Positions 46,188 through 63,824 of a stretch of 64,000 nt of DNA are shown piece by piece (the stretch's first letter is position 1; every line of letters begins with the position of its first letter). The stretch is from NCBI GenBank assembly GCA_048013815.1, contig CM106585.1, positions 6,386,001 to 6,450,000 on the forward strand, written 5' to 3'. Below the pieces are notes generated by a model. The model worked only from the letters and a program-made list of their open reading frames with translations. It did not search any database and was not told where the DNA came from. A program made the translations under genes and the position numbers. The stretch comes from Setoptus koraiensis (taxonomy: Eukaryota > Animalia > Arthropoda).

Positions 46188-49100
46188 ATGATGATCGACT
46201 TCGACGGCGACGCCATCCTGTGTCAGGTGTGCGGCGACAAGGCCAGCGGCTTCCACTACGGCGTGCATTCGTGCGAGGGCTGCAAGGGCTTCTTCCGGCG
46301 CTCCATTCAGCAAAAGATCCAATACAGACCGTGCAGCAAGAATCAGCAATGCAGCATATTGCGCATCAACAGAAATAGATGTCAGTACTGTCGCCTGAAG
46401 AAGTGCGTCGCCGTGGGAATGTCTCGCGACGGTAAGTTGTCTCCCTTTTCTCCCATTTTCCCCACTGCCCATTCACCATTTGCCCATTCGCCCGTTTTCC
46501 CCTTTGCGCACCCATTTGCGTCCTCGAGGTTTTGACCGAGATTTTGCAGCATTTTGCAGGATTTTGCAGGATTTTGCAGGATTTTGCAGGATTTTGCAGG
46601 ATTTTGCGACTTTGCGATTTTGTGCGCCAACTTGGCGCTACATTTTGATATCGCCGCCATTTTGCGCCCACAGCGCAGGCCAGCCCGCGCCCAGAGTGGC
46701 CCGAAGTGGCCCAATCGAACCAAACAGCCACCTGTTGCCGGGGCCGGCCGATGCGTGGCGACACCAGTGGCAGCGTGGGGCCAGCGGTCAAGCGACAAGC
46801 GTGCCGCACGCACCAACAAACAGCTGTTTGTTTGCGCCAATCGGCCGCCATGCGGCGCGATACGGCGCAGATTGGCGAGCCACAGTTGCCAGTGTGAGCT
46901 AGTGTGCCATCACGGTGGCTTGCCAGAGATGGCTGCAGGATGAGGCTTAATGAGTTTGCTTTGCCACTAAACTGCCTGCTGATGTGACGTCGTGTTGTTG
47001 CTGATGCCATCAATGCCAATCATTACATCATCTTTGTTTGCACATTTGCACTTTTGACATTGCACTCTGGTCGCCAGAGCGACAGGCATAGAGAGACAGA
47101 CAGACAGTCTGTGAGAGCGAGAGAGAGAGTTAATCGCTAGCCACTTTTTTCCAAACACCCCCTCATGTGCATTATATGACGCAAATAATCAATGTCGTTT
47201 CATTTCGTTGTCCTTCGCCTTGCTGCGCCACCGTCAATTGAACCATACATCACACAACAACTTGACAACAACGCTCAATATCGCTCACTGTCGGCTAACA
47301 TAGCGGTGAGATTTGGTCGTGTTCCGAAGCGCGAGAAAGCTAAAATATTGGCCGCCATGCAAAAGGTGAACGCAAACCATCATGACATGGATATCAGATT
47401 GGACATAGAGGACGAATTGAAACTAATCAACACGGTCGTGAGTGCTCATAAAGACACATGTGATTATACCAAAGAGCGCATTATGCCTCTGATTGAAAGG
47501 GCGCGCAACAATCCCATTTACGCGCAGTGCCCGCCGCAAGCTGTAAGTTTTGCAACCAAACCCCGACGAATTGCCCAAATTCGCCCACAAATCTGATCGA
47601 ATTGCCCAGATTTGCCAATTGGCAACTGGGCCAATTTGCATATCGTTATAATAAATATTTTACAATATTATAATATTTGCAATATGCTAATTATCATGCT
47701 ATCAATGTATATACATATTGCAGAGTTTTCCGCTGAACCCGATCAACCCACTGGCGGCAGCCCTGTCTTACCCTAAACCGGCGCACACCATCACAGTTAG
47801 CTCGGCCGGCGATTACATAACCGGCACCGGGCATGAAACAAGGAGAGAAACAACAATTACACAAGACGACAATGACCACAGTGAGGCCACCCCCGCCTCG
47901 GGCAACCATTTAAGCAATAGTAAGGCCGACACGCAACGGAGCGTCGAGGACCAGGAGGTCAAGATCAAGGCCGAACAGGTTGAGCAAGGGGTTGATTCGC
48001 ATCCGAGCAGCACTATTACGGACAAAAACTGCACCACTGACGACACCACCGCCACCGCAACCACCACCACCACCGCTACAACCACCGCGAATGTGGCCCC
48101 AGCGAAACGAGAGGGCGCCACAGGGCCACAACAGCCAGACACAGACACAAAAGGGCCCACCACTGATACCGACGATTGTTTGCCAAACAAACAAGCGGAC
48201 AATAACAACCAGCAGGACGACAGTGATCATGTGATGCAAACAGACCCAGTGCAATATCATAGCCAATCGTCGCTTGCAGCGAACACGAATTTGGTTAATT
48301 TGGCCAATTCGGGCCGGCCGAGCGAGCCGGAGGCTTGTCGAGACCATGAGCACGATGCTCGTTTGACGGGGGAGCCCACGAGCCAGCAAACAGCGACAAT
48401 TAGCGAACAAAAGCAGGCAGAACGCTTCTCGCCGGCAATAGATGGCGTCATTGAGTTTGCCAAGCGACTGCCCGGCTTTCAGTTGTTGTCACAGGACGAC
48501 CAGGTGACGCTGCTGAAGGCAAGCGTGTTCGAGGTGCTTCTAGTCAGACTGTCGTGCATGTTCGACGCCAAGACCCAATCGCTGGTGTGTCTGAATGGAC
48601 TGTTGTTGAAAAGAGACTCCATTATTGGTCAACAGACGGAGACACTGGCCAGACAGCAGCAACACAGCGGCAACTCGCCCGCAACAACAGCAAGCACCAC
48701 GACGAGCGGCCCCGATGGCGGGCAACTGTCGCTGGTTGCGTTCAATCATCAGCAGCAGCCAAACAACAACAACAACTACGCCAGTAATCAGTTTTCCAGC
48801 TCGGGCGCGGGATTTGGCGGCAGCGGCGGCGGCGGCGGCGCCACGGGCTGCCAGCAATCAAATAATGCCATATTTCTCATGGACTCCATGTTTGACTTCG
48901 CCGAGCGGCTTAACGAGGCCGAGCTGAGCGACCAGGAGCTGGCGCTGTTTTGCGCCAGCGTCATTATGGCCACCGGTGAGTAGAAAGACAAACAGCATTA
49001 GCCAGATATAACTCTCTAAATCATCATGTAAGACGACCTAGAGCACAAGCAACTGAGCTGACAACTAATGGCCCTCTATGGCCCGCGCGCGCAACTCGCA

Positions 49101-57500: not shown

Positions 57501-60500
57501 ATCAACAACCAACAACCAACGATAAACAACCAACGATAAACAACCAACGATAACCAATCAACAGACCGGCCCGGCCTGAGGAACGTGGAGCTGGTGCACA
57601 AGATCAGCGACAAACTGAACGACGTGCTCGAGAGGACCGTGCAACGCACCCACCCGCACCATTCGAATTTGTTCGGCGAGCTGCAGAAGAAAATCACCGA
57701 CCTGCGCACCCTGAACACGCTGCACTCGGACAGGCTGCTGGACACGTTCAACTCGACCGCGGCCCAGCACCCGTCGCTGCACCTGGCGCGCAGCGCACCC
57801 AGCGCCGACGACGACAAACTAGTGCAGCACTACGGCTCGTGGCCCTCGCTCGACCAGTCCCACCAGCAGCAGCAGCAGCATCAGCACCATCAACAGAATC
57901 AGCAACAGCAGCAAAAGACGCGCGGACCAGGCGCACAGCAACTGGCCAACATGATGATTGAGTCGCTGTACGAGCGTCAACCACCAACCACCACAACCAC
58001 CAGCAACACCATGACCACAAACAACAACAACACCAATATCAGCATAAGCATTCAAGTCAACAACAACAACAGCACCAACAACAACCAATCGCGCAACCCG
58101 GACGCCAAAATCGATGCCTACGATCGGCTCATGTCTCCAACCTCGACCACCAACTACAATTATCCTCCAATCGGCGGCCACTATCAGCAGCACAACAAGC
58201 ACAACAACCAGCCCACTCATCACCAGCTCCAGCAGCACAACAACCAGACCATTCAAATGCTTCCGGTCAACCTGACCGCCGTCTCGCCAACGTCTCACCA
58301 CCAGCATCACGGCAACGATATGTGTTGCGCAGACATGCAGTGCAAATCAACACCGCAAAACGTGTCCACAACCACCACCGCCAACAACAACAGCAACAAC
58401 AACAGCAACAGCGGCAACGCAACCGTCAATTCGACAACCAGCAGCACGTCGTCGTCGGCGGCCGCCGCCAGCATCATCGAGCAGTATCTGAGAAATCAAT
58501 CCGCTGTGGCGGAGGCCGCGGCAGCAGCGGCCGCCGGTCTGTCCGTCAGACACCAGCCGTCGGCTCAACAGCAGCAGCAGCAGCAGAAATCAGCCAGCAA
58601 CAGTGGCGAACAGCAGCACTACACGACACTCACCAATCTGCTGCACCACAAGGATCACCAGCATCATCATCATCCCTATCAAAGTCATAATATGAAGAAT
58701 CGCATTGACTCGCCAACAGATTCGGGCATTGAATCGGGCAAAGAAAACGGAGGCATGCGCTCCATAACGCCCAACGGGTCGTCGATTTGCTCAAGTCCGT
58801 CTCGTTCGATGATGGGCGATCATCACTTCAACCATCATCACCATCATCACTTTGGCAACAATCTTCACCTATCCTCGTCATCCTTGGCGAGCTACCAGCA
58901 GCAACAGCAGCACCATTCGAGCGCCATTCAGCGTCATCATCAGCACACAATGATTGAATCATTCAATAATCATCATCATCTCACATCGTCATCGTGCGGC
59001 GAGCAAGCCTCATCAATTAAAGTTGTCACCACCAATTCGTCATCGTCGTCGGCGTCATCGCAACAACAAACCAACGCCAATCACAATTCAGTTCAATTGG
59101 GTCTGGCCAATCAAGCGCACACAAACAACGCCAGCGAGCTAATTACAACTAGCGCCAAGACCAACAACAACTACACAATGACACCCACTACCACCATCGA
59201 CGACATGCCCATGCTCAAGCGAGCCCTGCAGGCGCCCCCTCTAATCAACACCAACATGCTCATGGATGAGGCCTACAGGCACCATAAGAAATTTAGAGCT
59301 GCCCAGAGGAAGGAATCTGTGGATCATCAAATAGGTTCAACAACAGGCAGCACAACTGGCACAAACGGTAATAACAGCGCAACAACAAACAATATTAATT
59401 TATTGGCCTCTAACAACAATCACACATTAATTATGCCAAACGATGACAATATTACAAACACTCAACTCCATATTGAATCACCGCCTATGTCTAAGATATT
59501 ACATAAGCATTTAACCAGTGGTCATAATAATAACAATCAAACAAATTTGGATAAATCATGCAATGGTGACCAGCATCAATTGGCTTCTACTCATTCAACG
59601 TTGCTTAAGACATTGGGTCAGCCATCTAGATATTTGAACGAGCAACAAATTAAACGTACGGATCTCATACATAATCTTATAATGCGCTCAGAACAATTGC
59701 CACCAAACAATGCAACTACTACCACTACCACCACCACTAGTACCACTAGTCCTGTTGGCGGTAATGTAGAACCCATAACAACGGACGACACCAATGGCAA
59801 CAGCAACAAAAATCAATCAATTGTTGTTAATTATGACTCTGATTTACACAGGATTCTCACATCTAGAGCACCAATAAATTCAGCAGTGTCTCAACATCAA
59901 TCAATCTCAATAACTGCTGGCATTGGTGCTAGCCAACATCATCATCATCATCAAGTGACCACCAACGGTAAACTACGTCAACAGCAGCATCATCATCTTC
60001 ATCACAACATAAATAATAATAATAATAATAATGGCCACTATTCGACACTGTCGGCCAACAACCATTCGCAATACACTAATCAGTCACACAATGTTTCGCA
60101 CAGACGCTCGTCATCTTCTAATTCCTCGTTGTCGCCATCGCCAACATCGTCAATCAGTCCCGATTGTGGATTGCCTGTTAGTCATCATCTCTGTGGTCGA
60201 CATTTTAATAATATCAACATCAATAATCATTTCTCCAATAATCATATCAGTCAGCATCATTTGAAACAACCGACATCAGCCATGCTATTGGCCCGATCAC
60301 CTGTGTCTCCATTAGGTTCATGCGGAACTCATAGTAGTAGCGGAATATCATCCTCACTATCATCATCTACATCGTCATCGCCTGAATCACCTCGTCTTAT
60401 TACAACAATGGGCGGAAGTCATCAGCATTTAATTAGTGAAACAACTAACTCATCGTCTAATAATACAGTTGGCCTAAATAGTATGAGTAAATTGAGCTTG

Positions 60501-60710
60501 AACGGAGGAAGCGGACTGCAAAATTTAGATGACACTTTGATGGCAGCCAAGCTTCAACTTATGTCGAGTAGAACCATGATTTCGCCTAATATTACTAATA
60601 ACATGATTAAAGGTACCATTGCCATGATCGATGAACAGGATCATCTTCCATCGATGATGGAGGCCTCTAGCCCAGCCTTGGTCCAACCACTTAATCTATC
60701 AAAGAAGTGA
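46188..60710 (+). CDS. Eip75B: Ecdysone-induced nuclear receptor E75 (NR1D/Rev-erb group), 4 coding exons (46188-46431, 47304-47542, 47724-48975, 57565-60710), ~1626 aa
   Basis: [41 protein letters not shown]; [12 protein letters not shown]; [35 protein letters not shown] and DLRTLNTLH; F-domain [10 protein letters not shown] and [12 protein letters not shown]; terminal QPLNLSKK. All three introns (872, 181, 8589 nt) are GT-AG and frame-consistent. Confidence 0.96.
46541..46607. repeat. ~6.7 x 10-bp tandem repeat ATTTTGCAGG in E75 intron 1
   Basis: Direct reading. Confidence 0.95.
49262..53481. promoter_or_regulatory. Homotypic cluster of nine FTZ-F1/NR5A sites (TCAAGGYCR) in E75 intron 3; putative enhancer
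   Basis: Exact matches at 49262(+), 49439(-), 49748(+), 49936(-), 50496(+), 51229(-), 51888(+), 52009(+) and 53473(-). Confidence 0.7.
50086..50173. repeat. ~4.5 x 18-bp tandem repeat CTGGCTCGCTTGCCACAA
   Basis: Direct reading. Confidence 0.9.
54635..54645 (-). promoter_or_regulatory. Perfect RORE/RevRE TAATTGGGTCA (HR3/E75 monomer site)
   Basis: Exact WAWNTRGGTCA match in E75 intron 3. Confidence 0.45.
56230..56314. repeat. 5 x 17-bp tandem repeat CCAGACTCTGGTTGTRG
   Basis: Direct reading. Confidence 0.95.
57512..57553. repeat. 3 x 14-bp repeat ACAACCAACGATAA just upstream of the E75 exon 4 acceptor
   Basis: Direct reading. Confidence 0.9.
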
Positions 60711-63233: not shown

Positions 63234-63824
63234 ATGCCTCGTGTTCCAACAGTACACAGTAAGACCTATGTTACCCCTAGACGTCCTTATGAAAAAGAAC
63301 GTCTCGATCAGGAATTGAAACTAATTGGTCAGTTCGGACTTCGTAACAAGAGAGAAGTATGGAGAGTCAAATACACTCTGGCAAAGATCCGTAAGGCTGC
63401 TCGTGAACTTCTTACATTGGAAGAGAAGGATACCAGACGTTTGTTTCAAGGTAACGCATTGTTGCGTCGTCTTGTCCGAATTGGTGTGTTAGACGAGAGC
63501 AGGATGAAATTGGATTACGTCCTTGGTCTGCGAATTGAGGACTTTCTAGAGCGCCGTCTACAAACTCAAGTGTTCAAACATGGTCTAGCTAAGAGTATAC
63601 ATCATGCCCGTGTTCTTATCAGGCAGAGACACATTCGCGTTAGGAAACAAGTTGTTAACGTACCATCGTTTGTTGTTCGATTAGATTCTGAGAAGCACAT
63701 AGACTTCTCATTGAACTCACCATTCGGTGGTGGTCGCCAGGGACGTGTAAAGAGGAAGAATTTACGTAAGGCGGCAAGTGGCGAGGGTGCCGGTGGGGAT
63801 AATGCTGATGATGAAGAAGAGTAA
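63234..63824 (+). CDS. RpS9: 40S ribosomal protein S9 (uS4), 196 aa, intronless CDS
   Basis: [44 protein letters not shown] and [18 protein letters not shown]. Confidence 0.98.

Follow-up and report, generated by a model that had tools for sequence, protein, structure and literature searches.

A derived cysteine-to-phenylalanine replacement at the haem-thiolate position of the nuclear receptor E75 in Setoptus koraiensis

To our knowledge, E75 and Rev-erb are the only nuclear receptors in which haem serves as a redox- and gas-sensitive ligand. The Cys of their Cys-Pro haem-regulatory motif (fly Cys396, human Rev-erb beta Cys384) is the Fe(III) thiolate ligand, and the axial His of helix 11 is fly His574 and Rev-erb beta His568. 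As far as we know, the Cys-Pro thiolate ligand has hitherto been treated as invariant in E75 and Rev-erb. The E75 (NR1D3) gene described here lies on the + strand of a 64,000-nucleotide (nt) stretch of Setoptus koraiensis DNA (the window, meaning the whole stretch that was analysed). In its product, a receptor of the moulting-hormone response, the residue aligned to fly Cys396 and Rev-erb beta Cys384 is Phe. The results show that a species-level Cys-to-Phe replacement has genuinely occurred at the canonical haem-thiolate position, that it is derived, and that the E75 carrying it is expressed and constrained.

In Rev-erb beta the dissociation constant (Kd) for haem is 0.1 nM in the ferric/thiolate state and ~22 nM in the ferrous, Cys-off state, and a Cys374-Cys384 disulfide acts as a thiol-disulfide redox switch (bioRxiv 10.1101/2020.06.22.164806). 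Some haem is still bound by the Rev-erb beta mutants Cys384Ala and His568Ala, and also when both changes are combined, Phe405 belongs to a set of three residues picked out for their interlocking with haem, and the basic residue three positions after the His in E75 is expected to attract the haem propionates (Pardee 2009, PMC2652392). Fly Cys468 has been described as a second haem-binding Cys (PMC2652392, citing de Rosny 2006 and Reinking 2005).

A reading of the window from its sequence only had placed Phe in an SFPLNP motif in place of the canonical Cys, and this was borne out by the sequence, the reading frame and independent contigs. Exon 2 (47304-47542; the extension and helix 1, ending IYAQCPPQA) closes with CAA GCT|GTAAGT (Q-A), with the donor at 47543. 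It is followed by a phase-0 GT-AG intron of 181 nt (47543-47723), at a position conserved in arthropod E75, whose 3' end reads ATATTGCAG. Exon 3 opens with AGT TTT CCG CTG AAC CCG (S-F-P-L-N-P), and its first 17 residues (47724-47774) include Phe, encoded by TTT at 47727-47729, at the haem-thiolate Cys position. The AG at 47722-23 is the sole AG within the last 35 nt of the intron. An acceptor AG two bases downstream, which had been described as out of frame, opens a frame closed by a stop after 16 codons. The other residues named in that reading were also confirmed where it had put them: the helix-11 His (CAC, 57723-57725), the LVCLNG Cys (TGT, 48588-48590) and an upstream Cys (TGC, 47528-47530).

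Read evidence was taken from Logan contigs, which lose minor or rare variants. The X2 contig (study P2, 2241 nt, depth 204) covers 47119-49050 with three differences from the window, none of them at 47727-29, and the X5 contig (study P3, 413 nt) covers 47483-47895 with a single difference, at 47750. The possibility that independent data would show TGT or TGC was thus answered by P2 and P3, where neither codon appears. TTT is the assembled allele in three studies (the source sample, P2 and P3), and an assembly error at 47727-29 was ruled out by the agreeing contigs of the two further studies. Low-depth X2 contigs were also seen that are 85-90% like the zinc-finger exon (46272-46431) and the 47302-47373 stretch; these are other nuclear-receptor genes or other arthropods in the sample, not a Cys-bearing second copy of E75. 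In the intron before exon 2, a GA/CA-rich simple repeat (47090-47129) drew partly fitting contigs from all runs, and the depth spikes there are repeat artefacts.

Transcription and splicing were followed in RNA-type contigs. The X7 contig runs on 48907-48975 and then through 30 letters identical to 57565-57594, which establishes the exon 3/exon 4 joint and therefore that X7 contains spliced E75 mRNA. Contigs X10 (47741-47985) and X7 (47912-48260 and 48387-48703) cover 47741-48260 and 48387-48703 without a break, and the low-complexity parts of exon 3 are therefore exonic. For the exon 2/exon 3 joint (47542/47724) we infer the splice given here, and the case is strong, because the intron is a canonical GT-AG intron in a conserved position, the L001 contig of the sister species (below) has the same arrangement, and the spliced product aligns without gaps. 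Dozens of arthropod genomic E75 fragments end at the same codon boundary (CPPQM|VS, CPPTL|VS, where VS is the translated GTxAGx donor), and in L001 donor and acceptor are placed as in the window. The gap-free alignment with other E75 proteins can be illustrated with Strigamia, IYTQCPTQLACPLNPNP. No CPLNP-like coding stretch was found elsewhere in the window's E75 region, so the suggestion that a different exon might supply ACPLNP found no candidate there. An alternative acceptor or hidden exon giving ACPLNP was ruled out, there being one AG in 35 nt, a next AG that is out of frame, and no CPLNP stretch.

The canonical Cys was then surveyed across E75. E75 sequences came from two word-based searches, one with helices 8-11 and one with helices 3-6, and from an exhaustive HMMER search in which exon 2 was the query; a metagenome scan contributed 80 further loci. 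In 91 proteins helix 3 could be recognised and was preceded by 30 or more residues; of these, 90 had Cys-Pro-[Leu/Met]-[Asn/Lys] no more than 60 residues upstream of helix 3 (ACPLNP in 71, TCPMKG in 9, TCPLNP in 4, plus others). All 38 metagenome loci that contain helix 3 also had the canonical Cys-Pro. The lone exception among the 91 was the predicted E75 of the eriophyoid mite Fragariocoptes setiger, which has no PLNP and a single Cys-Pro (ATCPGQH) ~105 residues before helix 3, within a single uninterrupted exon. The canonical thiolate Cys was thus invariant elsewhere among the ~130 arthropod, mollusc-like and metagenomic E75 sequences surveyed, the Fragariocoptes Cys-Pro lying further upstream, and no surveyed sequence but the window E75 combined an intact motif context with loss of the Cys. 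A literature search found no paper describing an E75 without this Cys; several key biochemical papers lay outside that search, and an earlier mention is possible.

The arachnid framing of the sequence-only reading was correct. In exon 2 the closest named relatives are the acariform mites Oppiella, Medioppia, Brevipalpus, Dermatophagoides and Tetranychus (60-64% identity). Much closer is L001, a Logan contig of 1837 nt from sample SRR33593474, whose exon 2 is 94% identical to that of the window and whose exon 3 opens AGT TGT CCG CTC AAC CCA, with the Cys retained. Over 495 aligned coding nt, the nonsynonymous divergence (dN) between the two was 0.027 and the synonymous divergence (dS) 0.665 (dN/dS ~0.04), while the intron and insertions were mostly unalignable. 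L001 is taken as another species because of this dS and the largely unalignable intron and insertions. At the start of exon 3 the 17 codons differ at 11 nt, 10 of them synonymous; the sole replacement is Cys/Phe, and 16 of the 17 residues are identical. Since L001 and every outgroup carry Cys, the comparison shows that TTT is derived and arose from TGT by one G-to-T transversion on the branch leading to the window. The word-based protein search with helices 3-6 returned nothing above 76% identity, a search with the first 100 residues of exon 3 found no relatives, and the metagenome scan gave nothing above 64% identity, so L001 is the only close relative found.

An E75 tree groups the window with Fragariocoptes (98/95), but the long branches and unusual composition of both make this grouping a lead and not a proof. 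They have in common insertions at the same two sites, a V-MAT signature and an 11-residue signature. It was also noted that Fragariocoptes setiger E75 (L082 1966-5262, GCA_019968535.1) has no intron between its exon 2 and exon 3 equivalents and no PLNP, and that the last 90 residues of the deposited model look more like a mis-joined piece than like helices 8-11.

Across 61 other E75 ligand-binding domains (LBDs), 93 alignment columns show conservation of 90% or more, and the LBD of the window E75 matches 79 of them. Pocket residues were mapped from those named in the main text of PMC2652392. The axial His is present in 61/61 E75 and in the window, the Cys468 equivalent (LVCLNG; I-C-L-N-G in fly) in 57/61 and in the window, and the equivalents of Rev-erb beta Phe409, Phe443 and Phe454 in 61/61 each, with the same residues in the window. 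HSEKLL has become HSDRLL in the window, a change of Lys to Arg three residues after the His that keeps the charge. Besides the Cys, the window departs from positions 100% conserved elsewhere in DFSERF, where Gln and Ala take the place of Phe and Ser, in KAGVF, where Ser takes the place of Gly, and after the His, where Arg takes the place of Lys. The window E75 is not decaying: it has an intact frame, an RNA contig shows splicing, and purifying selection on it is strong. Had constraint on the 17-codon segment been lost in either lineage, replacements would have accumulated there. Either the segment still has a role in the species of the window, or the Cys was replaced very recently, two alternatives that two species cannot separate.

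The LBD is at the same time remodelled. From the Cys position to the helix-3 Phe there are 233 residues in the window versus 16-33 (median 23) in the 61 other E75. The difference lies in insertion 1 (47775-48419), a T/D/A/S/Q-rich, low-complexity stretch of 215 residues between SYP and ERFSPA, that is, between the haem-regulatory motif and helix 3. Insertion 2 (48627-48866) consists of 80 low-complexity residues between the beta-turn/helix 6 and helix 7. KRDSII stands on one side of it and helix 7 on the other, and the Rev-erb beta alignment breaks exactly there. L001 has both insertions (883-1500 and from ~1722), and Fragariocoptes has insertions at both sites (L082 2480-4045). The short tether of 16-33 residues and the DFSxRF helix-3 start that are typical of His/Cys haem sensors are absent in the window. 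Within insertion 1, a window-specific Cys in EACRDHEHD (48336-48338), absent from L001, lies 30 residues before the helix-3 Phe with two flanking His; its spacing may be chance, as there are three Cys in this fast-evolving insertion. Codon-length indels were observed in the poly-Thr/Ala tract at 48052-48062 (9 nt fewer in X5, 3 nt fewer in X7) and are length polymorphism within insertion 1. For the eriophyoid Aculops lycopersici, Greenhalgh 2020 reported "no LBD predicted" for E75 (PMC7738191). Long insertions probably explain why predictors miss the eriophyoid E75 LBD, and the published statement is to be qualified, since the window LBD is present, constrained and split by long disordered insertions.

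Two Cys-Pro motifs 6-7 residues apart are found in many arthropods, as YTACPPTL-ACPLNP in insects and Daphnia, YTQCPTQL-ACPLNP in Strigamia and YAQCPPQM-ACPLNP in mites and ticks. The upstream Cys is present in 41/61 aligned E75, is kept in the window (47528) and L001, and is missing in flies. From this distribution the upstream member of the C-P-P-x-x-A-C-P pair is ancestral in arthropod E75, and the 47528 Cys is therefore neither a misaligned canonical residue nor a new ligand. Of the proposal that the window might use this Cys-Pro instead, the presence of the motif stood; its being new or relocated did not, because it is an ancestral second motif found in 41/61 and in L001. An alignment shift that would make the 47528 Cys the canonical residue was ruled out, as relatives carry both motifs side by side, and Strigamia, mites and L001 align with the window without a gap; the alignment does not place this Cys at the canonical position. 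The upstream Cys-Pro also resembles the Cys374/Cys384 pair of Rev-erb beta and seems unstudied. If the arthropod Cys pair works like Cys374/Cys384, the window has lost a redox switch too.

Taken as a whole, these comparisons favour, with about even confidence, a single recent Cys-to-Phe change in a receptor that most likely still holds haem, with its redox and nitric oxide (NO)/carbon monoxide (CO) switching altered and the receptor not abolished. The gene would be the single E75 of an acariform mite, probably an eriophyoid or close ally, in which one G-to-T transversion turned Cys into Phe after the split from the L001 species. Haem would most likely still be held, through the His of helix 11, the basic residue at +3 and a hydrophobic pocket that is mostly kept; its retention is probable because these elements persist and because Rev-erb beta mutants and the ferrous state still bind haem. 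The canonical His/Cys six-coordinate ferric state would be absent, and the sixth position might be taken by the LVCLNG Cys, the upstream Cys-Pro or a neutral residue, or be left open. Any of these outcomes would alter redox and NO/CO switching and would not abolish the receptor. The loss of the Cys was probably tolerated, since the disordered insertion of 215 residues had uncoupled the motif from helix 3 and the helix-3 Phe was already gone. Redundancy through the fly Cys468 equivalent may also make the loss mild. The sequence-only reading of a rewired sensor, whether haem-independent, His-only or switched to another ligand, is plausible.

Several observations weigh against this interpretation. 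A segregating minor Cys allele may exist, since Logan contigs lose rare variants, and the exon 2/exon 3 joint is crossed by no RNA contig, X7 and X10 beginning at least 17 nt inside exon 3. The Phe of DFSERF, the equivalent of Rev-erb beta Phe405 and present in 61/61 E75 elsewhere, is Gln in the window (KQAE before RFSPA, 48408-48419) and Glu in L001, and the pocket lid may already be non-canonical. This Phe was lost before the Cys, because L001 also lacks it and yet keeps the Cys. The constraint on the segment, measured from two species, is not assignable to the window's own branch, and the change may be too recent to have left a trace of relaxation. Finally, the absence of a predicted LBD in Aculops is compatible with decay of ligand function in the clade.

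These points lead to the possibility that the LBD is no longer a haem or gas sensor and that Cys-to-Phe was a neutral after-effect, the insertion having cut the N-terminal lid from helix 3 while the rest was kept for folding, co-repressor binding and HR3 antagonism. Such a haem-independent E75 would fit the spacing of 233 residues (against 16-33, median 23), the loss in both the window and L001 of the DFSERF Phe and Ser that are found in 61/61 elsewhere, the Fragariocoptes E75 without any PLNP motif, the Aculops report (PMC7738191) and the widespread regulator loss and simplification of eriophyoid genomes (PMC7738191, PMC11879100). We nevertheless consider it somewhat unlikely: the His, the +3 basic residue and the Cys468 and F409/F443/F454 equivalents are all retained, dN/dS is 0.04, L001 keeps the Cys despite the same insertion, and the identity of 16 residues around the lost Cys at a dS of 0.67 is hard to explain if the haem-capping segment has no role. 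The sensor might instead work essentially as before, with the thiolate role moved to the upstream Cys-Pro (47528), the LVCLNG Cys (48588) or the 48336 Cys. The upstream Cys-Pro is kept in the window and L001, the equivalent of fly Cys468, a second haem-binding Cys (PMC2652392), is kept as well, and the EACRDHEHD Cys, which L001 lacks, has roughly the spacing (16-33) of the canonical one. Relocation is unlikely, however, given that the upstream Cys-Pro coexists with the canonical one in 41/61, where it has its own role, and is missing in flies, that the 48336 Cys is not followed by Pro, and that the chance of some Cys at such a spacing is ~1 in 5 with three Cys in a 215-residue insertion.

A functional conversion by the Phe itself, giving five-coordinate, His-only haem with a bulky Phe over the haem face and a permanently "Cys-off" receptor, is distinctly unlikely on the sequence comparison. 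If it were true, the still-conserved 15-residue segment would keep the Phe in that place, there would be no ferric thiolate state and no thiol-disulfide switch, haem would bind more weakly and reversibly, and NO/CO (or O2) would bind directly at an open site, making a re-tuned gas sensor in the moulting timer of a minute plant-parasitic mite. That the Phe is an artefact or minor variant, whether an assembly or consensus error, a rare allele, or a codon by-passed through another splice site or exon that restores Cys, is highly improbable. The exon 2/3 joint without an RNA contig, the suppression of minor alleles in Logan contigs and a possible shared origin of the samples would leave room for it, but the P2 (depth 204) and P3 contigs match the window at 47727-29, the acceptor has no competing AG within 35 nt and the AG two bases on breaks the frame, arthropods and L001 share the position and phase of the intron, and there is no other CPLNP-coding stretch in the E75 region.

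The remainder of the gene is that of a complete E75. Splicing 46188-46431, 47304-47542, 47724-48975 and 57565-60710 in silico, all on the + strand, gives one open frame of 1626 residues. The DNA-binding-domain exon (46188-46431) has both zinc fingers, ends GMSRD + G before the donor GTAAGT and matches Pfam zf-C4 (PF00105, 1.3e-27); the E75/NR1D-type extension after the C4 double zinc finger can be read directly in the window. LBD helices 3-6 (48420-48626; Pfam PF00104) contain the second Cys, the fly Cys468 equivalent, and helices 7-8 (48867-48975) end exon 3 at the donor GTGAGT, from which the X7 contig continues into exon 4. The last exon (57565-60710) encodes helices 8-11 with the axial His, a long N/Q/H/T-rich tail carrying conserved E75 motifs including QPLNLSKK, and the stop. 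Because of the LBD insertions, the PF00104 match (3.7e-13) was limited to profile positions 20-86 of 213. In a search of the PDB, helices 3-6 matched Rev-erb beta (3CQV/2V7C, E ~5e-23), the top matches being Rev-erb beta and alpha, and helices 8-11 alone gave PPAR gamma as the best match. Sequence matches to the window protein were all E75, and orthology is supported by tree position, intron position and C-terminal motifs. Just downstream of E75, a ribosomal protein S9 gene (63234-63824) forms a single intron-less ORF of 196 residues, which is consistent with an intron-poor, streamlined mite genome.

Drosophila melanogaster E75 (Eip75B, NR1D3), which contains haem and responds to NO, CO and redox state, is the orthologue of the window gene. 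Both have the zinc-finger domain with its extension, LBD helices 3-11, the axial His574, Cys468, and the C-terminal motifs MPxLKRxLQAPPL and QPLNLSKK. They differ in that fly Cys396 (ACPLNP) is Phe in the window (SFPLNP) and that the window has the insertions of 215 and 80 residues; the fly protein has a DFSQRF-type helix-3 Phe and no upstream Cys-Pro, whereas the window has the reverse for both. The best match among solved structures is the LBD of human Rev-erb beta (NR1D2) with Fe(III) haem (PDB 3CQV, E ~5e-23). It shares with the window the equivalents of His568, Phe409, Phe443 and Phe454, the helix 7 segment and a second Cys upstream of the ligand position, but Cys384 has become Phe and Phe405 Gln in the window, and its long loop lies N-terminal to the Cys, whereas the long insertion of the window separates the former Cys position from helix 3.

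Dermatophagoides farinae, Brevipalpus obovatus, Tetranychus urticae and Sarcoptes scabiei have the same exon structure at the motif as the window. The acariform mites and L001 keep the canonical Cys (MACPLNP, MTCPLNP, SCPLNP), and the window alone has Phe. In Fragariocoptes the exon 2/3 intron and the PLNP context are gone and the Cys-Pro ATCPGQH remains, whereas in the window the context remains and the Cys is gone; judged by these sequences, the LBD is aberrant across the eriophyoid/window clade. L001 shares with the window both insertions and the whole 15-residue segment after the Cys/Phe, so that the two species form a natural one-residue mutant pair for what the thiolate contributes in E75, bearing on haem affinity, redox switching, the NO/CO response and the roles of fly Cys468 and the upstream Cys-Pro.

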